From the sequence record ON631220.1: DNA of 64,000 bases; one strand, 5' to 3'. The first letter of the stretch is position 1, and each line of letters starts with the position of its first letter. The notes under the pieces are model-generated. The model did not search any database, was not told the DNA's origin, and was given only the letters and a program-made list of their open reading frames with translations. Position numbers and translations under genes: made by a program. Below, in pieces: positions 26,654 through 55,960 of this stretch.

Positions 26654-27160
26654 ATGTTCCTATTAGCAGGTATACGAAAAATAATTGGTAGTGTACCATT
26701 GCATATATGGTTACTATTAGTTATTCTGATAGGTGCCTTAATTGGTATCATATATTACAAAAATAGTTATGAGACGGAACTTGTTCGCTCTACAGATTTA
26801 ATTGGAAAAATTAAATCTTATGAAGCGGCAGAAAAGGTTAGGATTGAATCAGACCGTATCTCCGATAAAATTCAAGCTGAACTAATTACTAAAAAGAAAG
26901 AGATACAAAAAGAGCAGGCGCAATCACGCACTGAGGTGATTGATGAGTACATTAGTTTATCAGGTCGTGGATATACTCCACCTGTATGGCCTGAAGTTAA
27001 AGCTAAAACAACTAATGGGGAAAGCACCACTACTGAGATTGAACATGAAACTGACACAAAAAAAGATAGCATTAATAAGTCTATTAATGCTATTGCTAAA
27101 CGGATGTACGAGCACTACTGTGCCGCCTCCCGTGAAAATACCAGTTGCAATCCCAAGTAG
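26654..27160 (+). CDS. Putative i-spanin (Rz-like)
   Basis: N-terminal TM helix (LHIWLLLVILIGALIGIIYY) followed by a coiled coil; an overlapping lipoprotein gene lies in another frame. Confidence 0.75.
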   Translation: MFLLAGIRKIIGSVPLHIWLLLVILIGALIGIIYYKNSYETELVRSTDLIGKIKSYEAAEKVRIESDRISDKIQAELITKKKEIQKEQAQSRTEVIDEYISLSGRGYTPPVWPEVKAKTTNGESTTTEIEHETDTKKDSINKSINAIAKRMYEHYCAASRENTSCNPK

Positions 27161-27407
27161 TTTGCTTCTCCCTTGTGATGTGGAAGCCCCACCTACAGCT
27201 AATGAGATCATCAATGCATTAGATAGATATAAAGCTGTTGGGGTTACTGATGAGAATGAAGCACGTTTCTTACTTATGACCGAACATTGGCTTTTACAAA
27301 CTGATGCACTTGGACTATGTAATATCCAAGTAGACAAATTGCGTGAATGGAACGAACGTCAACGTAATTTGGAGAATAGTCATGACCCTAGAGGACGTTC
27401 TGATTGA
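27045..27407 (+). CDS. Putative o-spanin lipoprotein (Rz1-like)
   Basis: Start moved to 27045 (MKLTQKK...). Signal peptide with lipobox LLNG|C, then Pro-rich VPPPVKIP and LLLPC. Confidence 0.8.
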   Translation: MKLTQKKIALISLLMLLLNGCTSTTVPPPVKIPVAIPSSLLLPCDVEAPPTANEIINALDRYKAVGVTDENEARFLLMTEHWLLQTDALGLCNIQVDKLREWNERQRNLENSHDPRGRSD

Positions 27408-27777
27408 GATCGATGGTAATCCTTTATCTTCTTCTAAAGACTATGGAAAGAAGATACGTACCTATTTGAATAGTGTATTGGAAAAGGAACAACGTATAAA
27501 TCTAAGTATAACTGGTGAGGAAGTACTTAGTCTAATTTATGCTATTACCGATTCAGATCTTCAATATAAAATTCTCAGCCGGGAAATTGCTGAAGTGAAG
27601 GCTAAAGATTCTTACCGTAATGCGGTATTGGTATTAGCTGGTGGCGTTACTCTTATTGGGGCATCAGTATCTACTATGGTAGTTTTATCTGGTGCACCTA
27701 TGTCAGAAGAAAGTGCCAATGTGTTAAAGACTATTGTGCAAGGTACCTTTGAATTAATAAAGATGCTTATGCAATAA
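27382..27777 (+). CDS. Membrane protein in the lysis region
   Basis: Start moved to ATG 27382 (GGAG SD), 131 aa, with a hydrophobic C-terminal segment. Confidence 0.7.
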   Translation: MTLEDVLIEIDGNPLSSSKDYGKKIRTYLNSVLEKEQRINLSITGEEVLSLIYAITDSDLQYKILSREIAEVKAKDSYRNAVLVLAGGVTLIGASVSTMVVLSGAPMSEESANVLKTIVQGTFELIKMLMQ

Positions 27778-27782
27778 AAACT

Positions 27783-27818
27783 ATAATAGCCTTCCTCTTC
27801 AAGAGGAAGGCTTTATAA
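27783..27818 (+). terminator. Stem-loop terminator
   Basis: AGCCTTCCTCT-TCA-AGAGGAAGGCT followed by TTATAAT. Confidence 0.8.
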
Positions 27819-27859
27819 TGCTATGTGGATTAAACATTTTACCACTATAGAGGTTTGAC

Positions 27860-28393
27860 ATGCAGGATATCTTTCCGTATGACATGGCATCGAGGGACGC
27901 GCTAGTAAAACTTGCGCGGGATGATTTAAAAATAAACTTCAAACCAGAAACAGTTACATTTGAAGATATGTTTTTTAGTCCAACCACGATTGAGCCTGGA
28001 CGTACATTTATTGAAATGATCGACATTACTACTGGCATTAAGTACATGTTAACTTACCGTCGGTTAGATTTTGCTGATCCACGTGCTATTGGTGAAGGAT
28101 CTATCCTTAAGATAGTTGGTACTTTAACACCTAAAGCAATTGCTGAAGAAATTAACCGTTCACGAGGTTGGAAGCTTGGACCAGATGATATTTCATTTGA
28201 TACAACACCAATCAATGCAACTACGGATATTGTTCCATACACGATAGTAGCTATGTCGAGTAGTTATGCTTACTATGGTGAATGTAATATACTAATTCAA
28301 CGTATTAATGATACGTCAGATACTATCCGACTATTAGAGAATGGTGCAGCACGTTATCTAGAAAATGGTCAACTCCGTTATCTAGAAAGTTAA
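27860..28393 (+). CDS. Virion structural protein (gp143-like) with three C-terminal R(L/Y)LE repeats
   Basis: 177 aa with a GAGGT SD; YRRLDF module; ends RLLENGAARYLENGQLRYLES. Confidence 0.85.
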   Translation: MQDIFPYDMASRDALVKLARDDLKINFKPETVTFEDMFFSPTTIEPGRTFIEMIDITTGIKYMLTYRRLDFADPRAIGEGSILKIVGTLTPKAIAEEINRSRGWKLGPDDISFDTTPINATTDIVPYTIVAMSSSYAYYGECNILIQRINDTSDTIRLLENGAARYLENGQLRYLES

Positions 28394-28415
28394 GTAATAC
28401 CCTCAATGAACCTAA

Positions 28416-29237
<822 letters not shown>

Positions 29238-40416: not shown

Positions 40417-40836
40417 TCAATTTGGAATACACTTCTCATGTAAACTTAATTTAAAGAGAGTTTTCAAATCCTTTAAAAAAGTTGCATCATCAGCATATTT
40501 CATCCAACACGGAGTCTTACGAATAAGCCTCATGAAAAATTGATCAGTGGTTAGATCTGCTTTATCAATCTTATCGATTGCTATCACGCCTTTCCATACG
40601 TACGGCCCATAATGAATTGGGAGTCGTAAGGCAGCTTCATCGCGTACTAGTTTCATGTTAGAATTCAAATGAGAGATCTTTTCACACTCATTTGTCTTAC
40701 ACTGTACTATAACGGAGTACAGTGACGCCATGACGCACATCCGCTTTAGTTCGGGATCAGCATAGTCCCAGAGCTTAATCCAAATTGCCCTGAAACCATT
40801 CTTAACCGACTTTTTGAATCTGCTAATAAGGTTCAT
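40417..40836 (-). CDS. Hypothetical protein (gp154 position)
   Basis: Start moved to ATG 40836 (MNLISRFKK), 10 nt after the RNase H stop; 139 aa. Confidence 0.75.
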   Translation of the reverse strand: MNLISRFKKSVKNGFRAIWIKLWDYADPELKRMCVMASLYSVIVQCKTNECEKISHLNSNMKLVRDEAALRLPIHYGPYVWKGVIAIDKIDKADLTTDQFFMRLIRKTPCWMKYADDATFLKDLKTLFKLSLHEKCIPN

Positions 40837-40846
40837 GGAATACCCA

Positions 40847-42295
40847 CTATTTTGGGAGAATAAATTGTGTATAGGGTGATTGATAGATAGCTGAACCATC
40901 ATCCGTCACGAACACAATTGAATATGAATAAGAATATGGGCCTTCAGCTACTACAAGAATTTCCATTTTAACTTTATTAGCTCCAATACGAGCTAATTGG
41001 TTTCTACTTGGAATATCGATATTTAATACAAGCTTTAATTTTATCTTACGATCTTTAAATGTGATCGGAACTTCTACAAAGCCTGTATTAGATGTAATCG
41101 TCTTAAGTAGTTGATAGCCAACTTTCTTACCCTTTGCGACTTCCTCGAAGAAGTGCTCGGTAATATCAATAATACCAACCGACTCTCCAAGTTTACCAGC
41201 CAAGTAATCTTCAAGACGACTGCGCATAACATTAAATGTAGCTACAGCATCATTTGCCATACGTGGTGGATTAAGAGTCCGACTAATGAGTTCATCTGTT
41301 GGCGTCGACAAAACATTGATATCTTTCCATACGACTAGAGCAGGTAGCCCCATGGATTCAATTTTCTGTCGAATGGTTGCACGATATGCGTTTGCCAAAT
41401 TGATGATACCCAGTTCTGGATTTTCAGTACCCAGTGCTTCTGTATGCATATTAATTAGTAACTGGAGATACTCATCTGGTTCATTTGCCTTATATACACT
41501 GAAGGTTGCTTCAGAGATACGACGCCCTAAAATTAAATCAGCTTTAGCTAATTTATCTTTAGCAGTGTCTTTTGGTTTATGACCATAGTTATGCATACGA
41601 CCTAAGTTATAGGTGTAATAGAACCCATCTGGTTCTTCTCCAGAGTTAATGGCGAAGAGTAACCTACTTTCGAGGATAAGTGGATTAACAACTTGTTTTT
41701 TAAGTTTGTTAATTTCCTCGCCTTTAACCGAAACCATCACTGGCTTATCATTATTCTGTCCCGAACCAAGCTTAGCGTTAGCATCAGCTTTTTCATTACC
41801 AATGTCTCCGTTATGTCCACGGACCCATTGGATGCTTAATGGTTTATTAGTTTCTTCCCATTTAGCTTTTAGTTCGACCATCTGTTTCCATAGGTCCTGG
41901 TTTGCTACCGGCGTGCCGTCTGATTTAATCCAATTAGACTTAATCCATTTGGGTAAATATGCGGTCATACCTTTTCTAACGTATTCACTATCCATGAGCA
42001 TCGTTAGTCTAGGAGCATCTGCTTCATGGGCTATTTTGAAAGCCTCAATCGCAGCGGTTAGCTCACCTGTATTATTAGTAGGGTTATTAGTTACACTACC
42101 AAATGCATCAATATAATTTAAAACAGTGCATGTCTCATCTGCACCTACATCTAAGTATCCCTTAGCTGTTGGTTGCTGTTTGGTGGCTGCTTTAGATTTC
42201 ATTGCAACATTTTCATAGGTATAACCATGAATACCCCAACCAGCTTTACCCTGTCGGAATGATCCGTCAGTGTATAAAACCATACCGTCTGACAT
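40847..42295 (-). CDS. rnhA: Ribonuclease HI with a long C-terminal extension (phiKZ gp155)
   Basis: LYTDGS, NNTGEL-x-A, MDSEY and WVRGHNG-x-x-GNE-x-AD motifs. Confidence 0.92.
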   Translation of the reverse strand: MSDGMVLYTDGSFRQGKAGWGIHGYTYENVAMKSKAATKQQPTAKGYLDVGADETCTVLNYIDAFGSVTNNPTNNTGELTAAIEAFKIAHEADAPRLTMLMDSEYVRKGMTAYLPKWIKSNWIKSDGTPVANQDLWKQMVELKAKWEETNKPLSIQWVRGHNGDIGNEKADANAKLGSGQNNDKPVMVSVKGEEINKLKKQVVNPLILESRLLFAINSGEEPDGFYYTYNLGRMHNYGHKPKDTAKDKLAKADLILGRRISEATFSVYKANEPDEYLQLLINMHTEALGTENPELGIINLANAYRATIRQKIESMGLPALVVWKDINVLSTPTDELISRTLNPPRMANDAVATFNVMRSRLEDYLAGKLGESVGIIDITEHFFEEVAKGKKVGYQLLKTITSNTGFVEVPITFKDRKIKLKLVLNIDIPSRNQLARIGANKVKMEILVVAEGPYSYSYSIVFVTDDGSAIYQSPYTQFILPK

Positions 42296-42350: not shown

Positions 42351-42752
42351 TTACTCATCACACTTTGCACGCCATTCTTCATATGCTTGCTCAATTTTAG
42401 CGCGCTCAGATACAATATGTGACTTTAATTCTTTTATATAGTCAGTCAACAAGATATCGATTTGTTCCGGAGTTTCTATAAACTCTGTAATAATCGGTGT
42501 TGGCGGTACCGGTTTCTTTCTTGGTAGTTCGAAAACCATACACTTCTTACTAGTATCCTTACTATATTTTTTAGGTGTAGGCAGAACTTTTTGTATTACC
42601 TCTTCTTTAGTTGTAACAACAGATGTATGATCATCTGTAGAAGAGGAGTGCTCATATTGGACCACAGTCGTGTTGTGCGTGTGGTACTCATGTGGCGTAT
42701 AAACACAGCCACTGATAAGTGGTAGGAGTATTAGAAAGAACTTTCTTGACAT
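42351..42752 (-). CDS. Putative lipoprotein (o-spanin-like)
   Basis: Start at ATG 42752 (GGTGGA SD): MSRKFFLILLPLISG|C lipobox, a Pro-rich segment and a C-terminal helix. Confidence 0.75.
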   Translation of the reverse strand: MSRKFFLILLPLISGCVYTPHEYHTHNTTVVQYEHSSSTDDHTSVVTTKEEVIQKVLPTPKKYSKDTSKKCMVFELPRKKPVPPTPIITEFIETPEQIDILLTDYIKELKSHIVSERAKIEQAYEEWRAKCDE

Positions 42753-42772
42753 GTGATCCACCAATTTGGTAC

Positions 42773-43063
42773 TTACTTTAGCAAGTCATTTAAACGACGG
42801 CGGCGCTCAAGCATTTCAGCCTTCTCAGGCGTCATTTTCTTGAGTCGATCCATTTCGGCTTTAACGGCCCAGTTGCTTGCTTTAACTGACTTCAACTCAC
42901 TAGTCACTATGAATAAGGTACCTAGTAATATTACAACTAGGATTAACATTGCCGTGACATGTTTGTTTTCCAGCAACACTTCCTTAATTGTTCTATCACC
43001 AAAGATAGCCCTCTTAAGGAATGGCCAAACGAAGAGCAAGGCTTTAATAGTCAAACCGAGCAT
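42773..43063 (-). CDS. Small membrane protein (TM plus coiled coil)
   Basis: 96 aa with a GAGGT SD; TM segment VTAMLILVVILLGTLFIV followed by a charged helix. Confidence 0.78.
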   Translation of the reverse strand: MLGLTIKALLFVWPFLKRAIFGDRTIKEVLLENKHVTAMLILVVILLGTLFIVTSELKSVKASNWAVKAEMDRLKKMTPEKAEMLERRRRLNDLLK

Positions 43064-43238
43064 GATGACCTCTGTTAGTACTATGCCTACCCATAAAAGC
43101 CAGTATTGGCATTTCTATCAATAGACTGTTACAAGGGTATTACGTAAAGCTCATAATACCAGACTTTTTATTTTAACACAACTAGAACAGACTGATTTTA
43201 TAGATGGAAACCCATCGCGCTCTAATTATGAGGATTAA

Positions 43239-44579
<1,341 letters not shown>

Positions 44580-54825: not shown

Positions 54826-55254
54826 ATGGCGGCATTCACTTTAGCAAACTTAATGGGTGAGCTAAAGAAGAGTTCCGTCATTGACTTATTCAACGATGGA
54901 AAGGTCAAGGCAGAACTCTATCCAGCTCATATGACATATATGGGTAGTGTGGTTGACTTACATCGTGTAGGCGATACATTCAGCTTCTATGTTGCAGATG
55001 GACATGGAGGCGTCACACGCTATCCATGTAGTAATCAGATTCTTGAATCGATAACATTAGAACCAGATGTTTATTATAAGTTAACTGGTAAAAAAGTTAT
55101 TGAGAAAAGAATTGAATTACCAGCTGTTACAGTACCAATTGAAGAACCCGCTAAGCGCATGCCGCTGGAAACAATCACATCAGTTGCTGTTATTGGCGGG
55201 TTTATTTTGTACGTTGGTACACGGTTTTATAAAGCATGTAAAAAATTAAAATAA
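54826..55254 (+). CDS. Early protein with a C-terminal TM anchor
   Basis: 142 aa; ITSVAVIGGFILYVG followed by a basic tail. Confidence 0.8.
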   Translation: MAAFTLANLMGELKKSSVIDLFNDGKVKAELYPAHMTYMGSVVDLHRVGDTFSFYVADGHGGVTRYPCSNQILESITLEPDVYYKLTGKKVIEKRIELPAVTVPIEEPAKRMPLETITSVAVIGGFILYVGTRFYKACKKLK

Positions 55255-55261
55255 TACGGTC

Positions 55262-55960
55262 ATGCAGTATACTTTAGGTACAATAACCCTAGAGGAAACT
55301 GCAATGGCCGTATTAGACCGTCAATTTAATATTCGTTTAAATGGTGCTGATTTAGATAAACAAAAGCGAATTATTAAAGAAATTTATACCAGGATTGCAA
55401 ATGTTAATAACACAGTAATCAATGGTACTACTGTAAGACTGATTTTATTTGTTAAAGCTAATGGCCAAGTGGCTACTGGAAGTGATGCTATTAAACTAAT
55501 CAACGATGCAGAAACTAATCTACAGGCGTGGGTTCTTTCTAATCGCTTTATCTTTAAATGGATGTTTAGTCATGCTAGTGATTTTGGTGCAATCTCTTCC
55601 AATTTTGAAGAAGTTTCACCAGGTGTTTATGATTGGAGTAAACGCCGTAGCTTTAATAAAGAATTCGATGATGAGCTAGCTAAAGCAAAAGAACGAAAAC
55701 TAATTCGTCAAAATAAACCTACTCTATTTAAAACTATTAAGAAAGTAGGTAAAGCTGCATATGAAACTATTTCAGATAACTCAACTGCTATTGTAAGTTT
55801 AACTGCTATTGGACTATTAGCTCTCAAAGTAACATCTGATCATAATCAAGTTATTAACCAAATGAAAGTTATTAAGAAATCAATTGGTAATATTGAGCTA
55901 CCACCTGTCGAAGTAATCGTAAATACAGTTGGTGATGTATTAGATATCGATTTGTATTAA
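55262..55960 (+). CDS. Early hypothetical protein with a hydrophobic segment near the C-terminus
   Basis: 232 aa; AIVSLTAIGLLAL segment. Confidence 0.8.
   Translation: MQYTLGTITLEETAMAVLDRQFNIRLNGADLDKQKRIIKEIYTRIANVNNTVINGTTVRLILFVKANGQVATGSDAIKLINDAETNLQAWVLSNRFIFKWMFSHASDFGAISSNFEEVSPGVYDWSKRRSFNKEFDDELAKAKERKLIRQNKPTLFKTIKKVGKAAYETISDNSTAIVSLTAIGLLALKVTSDHNQVINQMKVIKKSIGNIELPPVEVIVNTVGDVLDIDLY

Follow-up and report, generated by a model that had tools for sequence, protein, structure and literature searches.

Here, we identify PHIKZ156.1 and PHIKZ156, two adjacent minus-strand genes in a 64,000-nucleotide stretch of sequence record ON631220.1 (the window), as a conserved gene pair for a small membrane protein (gp156.1) and a lipoprotein (gp156) in chimalliviruses. 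We propose, with a probability of roughly 0.55, that the two proteins form an inner-to-outer-membrane bridge that does not serve lysis and in which the membrane protein is the core component. The window derives from a phiKZ-type jumbo phage: the 3.8 kb around the pair are 100% identical to Pseudomonas phage OMKO1 and 99 to 100% identical to more than 40 phiKZ-like genomes, and window positions equal phiKZ positions minus 117,833. An initial annotation of the window had described a 96-residue protein with a transmembrane (TM) segment, a lipoprotein gene starting 20 nucleotides (nt) later with an ISG|C lipobox, a Pro-rich stretch and a C-terminal helix, good Shine-Dalgarno sequences before both genes, and a position upstream of an RNase H gene. 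All of these features are present, and of the readings then offered, a repurposed envelope-bridging complex remains the best description of the pair.

In the model that we propose, gp156.1 would insert into the inner membrane with its N-terminus in the cytoplasm and its C-terminus in the periplasm (N-in/C-out), leaving an N-terminal helix with a WPF motif and a positively charged loop on the cytoplasmic side, while the TM helix would lead into a basic periplasmic tail of 43 residues and two helices. gp156 would be exported, lipidated at Cys16 and sorted to the outer membrane, where a disordered tether of ∼50 residues would hold a domain in which a Pro-rich strand packs against a long acidic helix, with a C71-C131 disulfide as the probable staple. 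The gp156.1 tail would bind this domain C-terminus to C-terminus, in a spanin-like manner, and in that way link the two membranes. The module would be made mid-infection from the operon 156.1-156-155(nlp2)-154; at the inner membrane, the membrane protein would serve to dock or place something, and it would itself be pinned to the envelope by the lipoprotein. Because conservation peaks in the cytoplasm-side N-terminus and several lineages have the membrane protein alone, we regard the membrane protein as the core component. We infer the topology, the binding and the outer-membrane location of the pair from the evidence presented below. The two genes and their parts are as follows, in window coordinates.

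42773..43063, minus strand: PHIKZ156.1 (gp156.1), predicted small inner-membrane protein of 96 amino acids (open reading frame (ORF) and translation; identical to PHIKZ156.1; phrog_14813; RNA contigs)
43010..43063, minus strand: gp156.1 codons 1-18, N-terminal hydrophobic/amphipathic helix with invariant W13-P14, WPFLK motif (alignment, identity, AlphaFold model of a fused homolog)
42905..42958, minus strand: gp156.1 codons 36-53, predicted transmembrane helix (hydropathy; charge of the preceding loop)
42776..42904, minus strand: gp156.1 codons 54-96, charged helical tail (charges; alignment; fusion at locus L044; charge covariation)
42351..42752, minus strand: PHIKZ156 (gp156), predicted outer-membrane lipoprotein of 133 amino acids (ORF; phrog_15897; profile search; RNA contigs)
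42705..42752, minus strand: gp156 codons 1-16, signal peptide with lipobox L-I-S-G-C, predicted lipidation at Cys16, followed by Val (alignment, profile matches)
42546..42704, minus strand: gp156 codons 17-69, His/Thr/Ser-rich disordered tether (predicted local distance difference test score (pLDDT) 47-61; variable across the family)
42354..42545, minus strand: gp156 codons 70-133, conserved domain with a Pro-rich strand (C71-x-x-F-x-L-P77...P83) on a 38-residue helix (pLDDT 92-98; alignment)

gp156.1 and gp156 as a pair

The two genes lie on the same strand, the membrane-protein gene first and the lipoprotein gene directly downstream after a 20-nt spacer, and Shine-Dalgarno-like AGAGG and GGTGGA sequences are located 5 to 7 nt ahead of the gp156.1 and gp156 starts. 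Under a strict lipobox filter, gp156 is the sole lipoprotein-type ORF of the window; gp141.1, the known outer-membrane spanin (o-spanin) of phiKZ, carries the variant lipobox LNGC and falls outside this filter. Because the details were found as described and the window holds a single strict-lipobox ORF, the pair is not a chance pattern; dozens of related phages moreover share its synteny. Both proteins match families of unknown function in PHROG over their full length, gp156.1 (residues 1-96) phrog_14813 at 1.2e-43 and gp156 (residues 1-133) phrog_15897 at 2.2e-64; gp156 also matches phrog_8165 at 1.8e-6. Pfam and NCBIfam scans of the two proteins gave nothing meaningful.

Several features support the proposed topology of gp156.1. 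The TM segment VTAMLILVVILLGTLFIV spans residues 36-53, with Kyte-Doolittle values of up to 3.25. A second, weaker hydrophobic segment at the N-terminus (residues 1-16) had been missed by the initial annotation and is the best-conserved part of the family: in an alignment of 25 gp156.1 homologs, W13 and P14 are the only invariant columns, and mean pairwise identity reaches 49% in residues 1-35 but only 25% in the tail and 21% in the TM segment. For the fused homolog at locus L044, AlphaFold predicts a helix in this N-terminal region. The loop ahead of the TM segment is neutral to positive in each of the 20 homologs examined (net charge 0 to +4), which fits a cytoplasmic position. The N-terminal WPF helix would lie on the cytoplasmic face of the inner membrane. 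The tail has 43 residues (+12/−7), a break at TP79-80 and a conserved C-terminal RRxxLxxLLK motif, and in phiKZ gp156.1 has no periplasmic Cys. Together, the L044 fusion and the positive loop suggest that this tail is periplasmic, where it would bind the lipoprotein. A class II-like holin would have two TM domains and a charged C-terminus in the cytoplasm. gp156.1 has two hydrophobic segments and a basic tail; judging from the fusion with a lipoprotein domain that bears the putative disulfide, however, the tail would be periplasmic, and in phiKZ the holin is gp142 (Manohar et al., Sci Rep 2026, PMC12894885).

gp156 is predicted to be an outer-membrane lipoprotein based on its ISGC lipobox, the Val that follows the Cys and the absence of an inner-membrane retention signal. 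Cys16 is invariant in the family alignment. A canonical lipobox is present in at least 135 of the 149 best profile matches, most of the other 12 having a variant lipobox or being fragments, and none of the lipobox-bearing sequences among these 149 has Asp after the lipobox Cys. In the AlphaFold2 model made with the family alignment, residues 1-69 are disordered, and residues 70-133 (pLDDT 92-98) form an extended Pro-rich segment and then a helix (residues 95-132) that ends by C131. The tether varies among family members in both length and sequence. The Pro-rich stretch is LPRKKPVPPTPII; C71 and P77 are invariant in the family, and P83 and C131 are nearly so. Because a 24-residue strand folding back on the 38-residue helix could place C71 beside C131, the two cysteines probably form an intramolecular, stapling disulfide. 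Foldseek searches with the gp156 model returned no solved analog from the PDB and only family members from BFVD, in which Rz1/o-spanin rows appeared at E > 5. The start of PHIKZ156 differs between records, with TTG at 42764 in RefSeq (137 amino acids, MVDHMSRK...) and ATG in the OMKO1 record (133 amino acids). The homologs in PhiPA3, 201phi2-1 and Phabio share an in-frame "xDHM" extension (window 42753-42764 in phiKZ), and the longer, TTG-started form may be real.

Three lines of evidence suggest that gp156.1 and gp156 bind to each other in the periplasm. A natural single-gene fusion of 170 amino acids (L044:1893-2402; IMG/VR UViG_3300020048_003360) joins a gp156.1-like N-half, with the WPF helix, a TM helix and a short stalk, to a gp156-like C-half that has neither signal peptide nor lipobox and can be aligned to the conserved lipoprotein domain, with the two cysteines and the two prolines retained. 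Because this domain, with its conserved Cys pair, is periplasmic where the two genes are separate, the fusion suggests a periplasmic C-terminus for the membrane protein. AlphaFold2 models the two halves at pLDDT 83-94 and 91-98 with a disordered linker; the predicted template modeling score (pTM) is only 0.47 and the arrangement of the domains in the model is thus undefined. Moreover, over the 20 loci compared, net charge is anticorrelated between the C-terminal 22 residues of the membrane protein and the lipoprotein domain (r = −0.62; +4 versus −4 in phiKZ), a value that was computed with shared ancestry ignored and is only suggestive. Finally, the adjacent gene order survives divergence of the neighboring RNase H to ∼25% identity. 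Altogether, the kept order, the fusion and the charge covariation support the idea that the two proteins work together, paired in the periplasm.

Distribution among chimalliviruses

By tblastn, the gp156.1 and gp156 genes are adjacent in all Pseudomonas chimalliviruses. The order around them is fixed, i.e., a divergent gp157-like head gene, the membrane protein, the lipoprotein where present, the RNase H gene and a gp154-like gene, and is seen in PhiPA3, 201phi2-1, Phabio, Noxifer, Xoo-sp14, Goslar, PCH45, Simmy50, SNUABM_48, FLC4-11C and LucasX; in pVa-21 and SEGD1, an extra endonuclease gene lies between the pair and the RNase H gene. An RNase H-adjacent membrane protein is present in every chimallivirus sampled and the lipoprotein in most of them, among phages that infect at least seven genera (phages of Pseudomonas, Xanthomonas, Ralstonia, Vibrio, Salmonella, Erwinia, Serratia and E. 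coli). The same order is kept in most of the 38 IMG/VR loci retrieved with a five-phage RNase H alignment. A word-based protein search recovered few relatives. A lipoprotein profile built from 18 sequences and searched against 1.84 billion representatives matched 593 clusters when the cutoff was E ≤ 1e-3 and 180 when it was E ≤ 1e-10; around one distant metagenome match on a sufficiently long contig the gene order is identical, and on two short contigs the RNase H gene lies directly downstream. As judged from these sequence comparisons, the pair is an old module that is vertically inherited in place beside the RNase H gene.

The membrane proteins start with a hydrophobic helix carrying a (W/L)-P-F-(L/I)-K/E motif, followed by a basic loop and a single TM helix, and differ in the length of the periplasmic part, which is a coiled coil of 110 to 140 residues in the long forms (Goslar, PCH45, Xoo-sp14, FLC4-11C and LucasX) and has ∼40 residues in the short forms of the Pseudomonas phages. 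The Xoo-sp14, FLC4-11C and LucasX membrane proteins match phrog_14813 at 2e-8 to 3e-4, the LucasX lipoprotein matches phrog_15897 and the pVa-21 lipoprotein belongs to phrog_8165; these shared profile matches tie the long and short forms into one family. By direct membership, phrog_14813 and phrog_37076 (membrane protein) and phrog_15897 and phrog_8165 (lipoprotein) hold chimallivirus homologs, and all four are labeled as of unknown function. In the literature, we found no paper noting a link between these PHROG families, the RNase H-adjacent position, or the long and short forms. Goslar, PCH45, Xoo-sp14, the Erwinia phages and several IMG/VR loci encode the membrane protein alone, and in some lipoprotein-less lineages the tail of this protein has only ∼20 to 35 residues. 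No embedded or overlapping lipoprotein ORF was found in the single-gene loci of Goslar, PCH45, Xoo-sp14 and the Erwinia phages.

Some gene models at these loci merit correction. The annotated starts of pVa-21 gene 137 (L015:723-1022) and Simmy50 gp149 (L011:2043-2387) are apparently too far downstream, and the in-frame upstream sequence adds the conserved N-terminal motif (FKLFMPLILE and LFFWSLPFIKK, respectively). In SEGD1 (SPN3US-like), a gap of the record contains two unannotated ORFs (L010:∼640-1190 and 1205-1738). One encodes a membrane protein bearing FKLLPFL as its motif, the other a lipoprotein (LLTGC) whose C-terminal part looks unlike the family domain, and a putative homing endonuclease is inserted between the lipoprotein ORF and the RNase H gene. 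In Ralstonia phage FLC4-11C, gp55 (L013:4622-5080) is an SLT-domain transglycosylase gene two genes 3' of the RNase H gene; thus, a cell-wall enzyme gene lies close to the spanin-like pair.

Expression and genomic neighborhood

The pair belongs to the 156.1-156-155(nlp2)-154 operon, which is expressed in the middle phase of infection. The surrounding features of the window are the following.

40847..42295, minus strand: PHIKZ155 (Nlp2), RNase H-like, next gene of the same operon (Pfam PF00075 RNase_H, 1.5e-25)
40417..40836, minus strand: PHIKZ154, final gene of the operon (phrog_9853; RefSeq coordinates)
43064..43241, no strand assigned: divergent intergenic region between gp156.1 and the head gene gp157, probable operon promoter (ends of Nanopore cDNA contigs)

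Gene 155 is co-transcribed with 154, 156 and 156.1; it encodes Nlp2, which is RNase H-like and essential for nucleus maturation and genome amplification, its expression is ChmA-dependent and high at 20 min, and the RNA-sequencing tables list both 156 and 156.1 as expressed (Gerovac et al., Nature 2025, PMC12571901). Contigs from public RNA runs, an analysis that yields neither transcription starts nor expression levels nor proof of a single transcript, cover both 156.1 and 156; one Nanopore cDNA contig (42023-43070) spans 155/156/156.1 and ends 7 nt before the 156.1 ATG, and the next begins at 43166. In database records, 156.1 and 156 are tagged by RNA sequencing only and the neighboring gp157 has a mass-spectrometry tag. 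A role in remodeling membranes for the early infection vesicle of the same infection, which had been raised for the pair, is made unlikely by this nucleus-dependent expression together with evidence tags from RNA sequencing alone, and the timing of gene 155 likewise argues against it. PHIKZ154, which matches only phrog_9853, a family of unknown function, has a counterpart behind the RNase H gene in all chimallivirus loci that were inspected.

Transposon sequencing (TnSeq) of phiKZ gave zero insertions after filtering in both 156 and 156.1; before filtering, 156 has 23 reads at 5 sites and 156.1 has 4,631 reads at 6 sites, the nonessential neighbors 158-160 have 9 to 19 sites each, and polar effects are documented in operons that have no internal starts (Chan et al., bioRxiv 2025.11.23.690004). 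With the essential gene 155 downstream and polarity of this kind, the insertion gap in 156/156.1 is ambiguous. The central 80% of 156.1 is empty, and at least one well-tolerated insertion probably lies at an end of the gene, given 4,631 raw reads of which none pass the filter.

Spanins, other readings and known systems

phiKZ already has a proven spanin pair. Its lysis cassette, genes 141-144, has been called necessary and sufficient for lysis and includes gp141/gp141.1, an overlapped pair of inner-membrane spanin (i-spanin) and o-spanin that fully complements lambda Rz-am Rz1-am, as well as the regulator gp143 and the endolysin gp144 (PMC12894885). In the window, the cassette occupies 26654-29237 on the plus strand and gp141/gp141.1 lie at 26654-27407, 15 kb from the pair studied here, which was rightly described as far from the lysis genes. 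SpaninDB has the same phiKZ coordinates for gp141/gp141.1 and holds overlapped pairs for 201phi2-1 and the chimallivirus Ea35-70 (Kongari et al. 2018, supplement). Genes 156 and 156.1 are unmentioned in Manohar et al. and Kongari et al. 2018, and a full-text literature search for gp156 with phiKZ returned nothing. Both gp141 and gp141.1 are nearly insertion-free by TnSeq (bioRxiv 2025.11.23.690004), so no other phiKZ gene replaces them.

Profile comparisons set the two pairs apart. With hhalign, only the signal peptide aligns between the gp156 family and gp141.1 or T4 PseT.2, nothing aligns between the membrane-protein family, in short or long form, and gp141 or T4 PseT.3, and the probabilities of the pair against the tested spanins (0.2 to 46%) are confined to the lipobox. 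At the profile level, gp156.1/gp156 are therefore rejected as paralogs of gp141/gp141.1 or of T4 PseT.3/PseT.2. A PHROG scan of the two proteins matched no known spanin family. Moreover, a canonical-looking spanin pair coexists with the RNase H-adjacent pair in three distant lineages, i.e., the Pseudomonas phages, FLC4-11C and LucasX. Our genome scan of FLC4-11C found a second, canonical-looking TM-plus-lipoprotein pair at 92062-91227, and our ORF scan of LucasX (MW825358.1, 171474-172578) found a multi-TM, holin-like ORF followed by an i-spanin-like ORF with an embedded lipoprotein. The canonical pairs are overlapped, embedded or separated; this variation is expected of exchangeable lysis modules and contrasts with the RNase H-adjacent pair, which is inherited in place. 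The embedded LucasX ORF (172274-172489; 71 amino acids, Pro/Cys-rich) looks like an unannotated o-spanin. In PCH45, the "Rz/spanin gp54" was considered as the RNase H-adjacent gene and rejected by the order of coding sequences (CDS): gp54 is the 54th CDS (55185-55721) and the RNase H-adjacent gene is the 68th (73634-74158). A phrog_214 profile had no match in five phage genomes, a method that we judged insensitive.

The spanin-like layout that had been recognized in the pair thus stands as regards separate genes for a membrane protein and a lipoprotein and most annotation criteria, and falls short at the level of profile homology to the tested spanins. By the criteria of Kongari et al. 2018, the genes are adjacent with the i-spanin-like one first, the o-spanin-like protein has a predicted outer-membrane lipobox, and the i-spanin-like protein has a strong TM segment (36-53) and a helical, hinged tail; the additional conserved N-terminal hydrophobic helix is atypical. 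Regarding periplasmic cysteines, gp156.1 has none, and the conserved C71 and C131 of gp156 are spaced in a way that suggests an intramolecular staple. The published spanin range is 62 to 300 residues, and i-spanin periplasmic domains of 45 to 55 residues are on record.

Several points weigh against the bridge that we propose, or favor a spanin. The combined periplasmic length (43 + 117 = 160 residues) lies inside the spanin range. In the ESM Atlas, gp156 is nearest to clusters with PF26831, the T4 o-spanin family (0.90, 191/256 features), and some long-form relatives weakly match the T4 i-spanin family phrog_739 (4e-5 to 2.5e-3); both are unconfirmed leads, and because the long-form membrane protein that matches at 4e-5 also matches SMC, Rad50 and other coiled-coil or helix-rich families, the phrog_739 match probably reflects coiled-coil bias. 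The pair may thus descend from spanins very remotely, or may actually work as a spanin. In addition, L044 is the only fusion among ∼150 family members inspected, the charge correlation may owe something to the shared ancestry that it ignores, the topology of gp156.1 and the lipidation and outer-membrane sorting of gp156 are sequence predictions, and the insertion gap in 156/156.1 may be mere polarity on the essential gene 155.

We regard it as unlikely that the pair is a true second two-component spanin, separated as in T4 and acting redundantly or conditionally in fusion or breach of the outer membrane at lysis. Gene order, the hinge at TP79-80, a Pro-rich lipoprotein with two Cys, the proposed C-to-C pairing and the total periplasmic length would all fit such a spanin, as would the two database leads and the siting of T4 spanin genes away from other lysis genes, and the conservation in phages of different hosts is what one would expect if the target were a membrane and not a host protein. 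However, gp141/gp141.1 complement lambda within a cassette reported as sufficient and have no substitute, homology to any tested spanin is lacking at the profile level, and canonical pairs coexist with this one; redundant spanins, one of the readings first offered for the pair, are accordingly improbable. Spanin membrane anchors are described as interchangeable and as having no functional significance other than to anchor, whereas the N-terminus is the most conserved part of gp156.1. The lipoprotein is absent in several lineages, some with tails of ∼20 to 35 residues, the L044 fusion lacks an outer-membrane anchor, phiKZ gp156.1 lacks a periplasmic Cys, and expression is in the middle phase from the nlp2 operon.

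Phage lipoproteins are classic exclusion factors, and chimallivirus procapsids assemble on the inner membrane and then travel to the phage nucleus; each of these facts invites a further reading. Less probable still than a second spanin is a periplasm-facing guard or sensor that would act in superinfection exclusion or would signal lysis inhibition to a cytoplasmic holin regulator via the conserved N-terminus. The bitopic architecture with conserved cytoplasmic and periplasmic ends favors it; moreover, PMC12894885 describes slower lysis at high multiplicity and a cytoplasmic location of the large holin domain and gp143, so that a transmembrane relay would be needed. By contrast, exclusion genes are usually early, accessory and receptor-specific, whereas this module is middle-expressed, syntenic and conserved across phages of many host genera, and Pfam, PHROG and NCBIfam scans matched none of the Imm, Sp, RI and Llp families. 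More speculative again is the idea that the gp156.1-family protein is an inner-membrane anchor of morphogenesis, with the cytoplasmic helix nucleating or holding procapsids and the lipoprotein pinning these sites to the envelope; it fits the position of the gene among head genes, divergent from the head gene gp157, and the conservation peak on the cytoplasmic side. We give least credence to two independent small envelope proteins that are chance neighbors in the nlp2 operon and form no complex. The membrane protein does occur without the lipoprotein in several lineages, and the L044 model reaches a pTM of only 0.47; however, the strictly kept adjacent order, the natural fusion and the covarying charges argue against independence.

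phiKZ-type phages serve as the model system for the phage nucleus and, as the identity of the window to OMKO1 illustrates, are used therapeutically; their envelope biology is little known, and the phiKZ lysis cassette was defined only in 2025-26. The gp156.1/gp156 pair adds a second and much older envelope module that travels with the core operon of the essential nucleus-maturation gene nlp2. This module has hundreds of metagenomic relatives and is free of transposon insertions after filtering, yet it is unnamed and unstudied. If the pair does bridge the membranes and has a docking helix in the cytoplasm, it would be the first link encoded by a phage that ties the envelope of the cell to the intracellular program of nucleus-forming phages, with possible roles at capsid assembly sites, in lysis timing or in exclusion. 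It also illustrates that spanin annotation by architecture alone can catch look-alikes that are not spanins.

The proposed bridge is reminiscent of several known systems and differs from each of them. Like the separated T4 PseT.3/PseT.2, for which lambda Rz/Rz1 is the functional model, it is encoded by two neighboring genes, the first for a membrane-anchored helical protein and the second for a lipoprotein, and it shares with these spanins a periplasmic helix hinge, a Pro-rich lipoprotein with Cys and enough residues to cross the periplasm, as well as, as suggested here for gp156.1/gp156, the N-in/C-out topology and C-to-C pairing; the T4 spanin genes are also sited away from the holin and endolysin genes. 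The phiKZ spanins gp141/gp141.1 come from the same phage and likewise consist of an inner-membrane helical protein and a lipoprotein; however, their genes overlap and lie on the opposite strand, 15 kb away, inside a holin-endolysin cassette. gp156.1/gp156 show no profile homology to T4, lambda-type or phiKZ spanins and are most conserved at the cytoplasm-side N-terminus, the membrane protein has a tail that is very short in the Pseudomonas phages and Cys-less in phiKZ, and some lineages do without the lipoprotein, which in one is part of a fusion that has no lipid anchor. The pair is also set apart by its middle-phase expression with a replication/nucleus gene and by the canonical pair that coexists with it wherever checked. 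T4 Imm and Sp and T5 Llp are small phage envelope proteins as well, and Imm, like gp156.1, has two hydrophobic segments. By contrast, they have no sequence similarity to the pair and are early, host- or receptor-specific accessory genes rather than an adjacent conserved pair; the middle-phase operon and at least seven host genera of the pair differ from the early expression and single-receptor specificity of T5 Llp/Cor-type exclusion.

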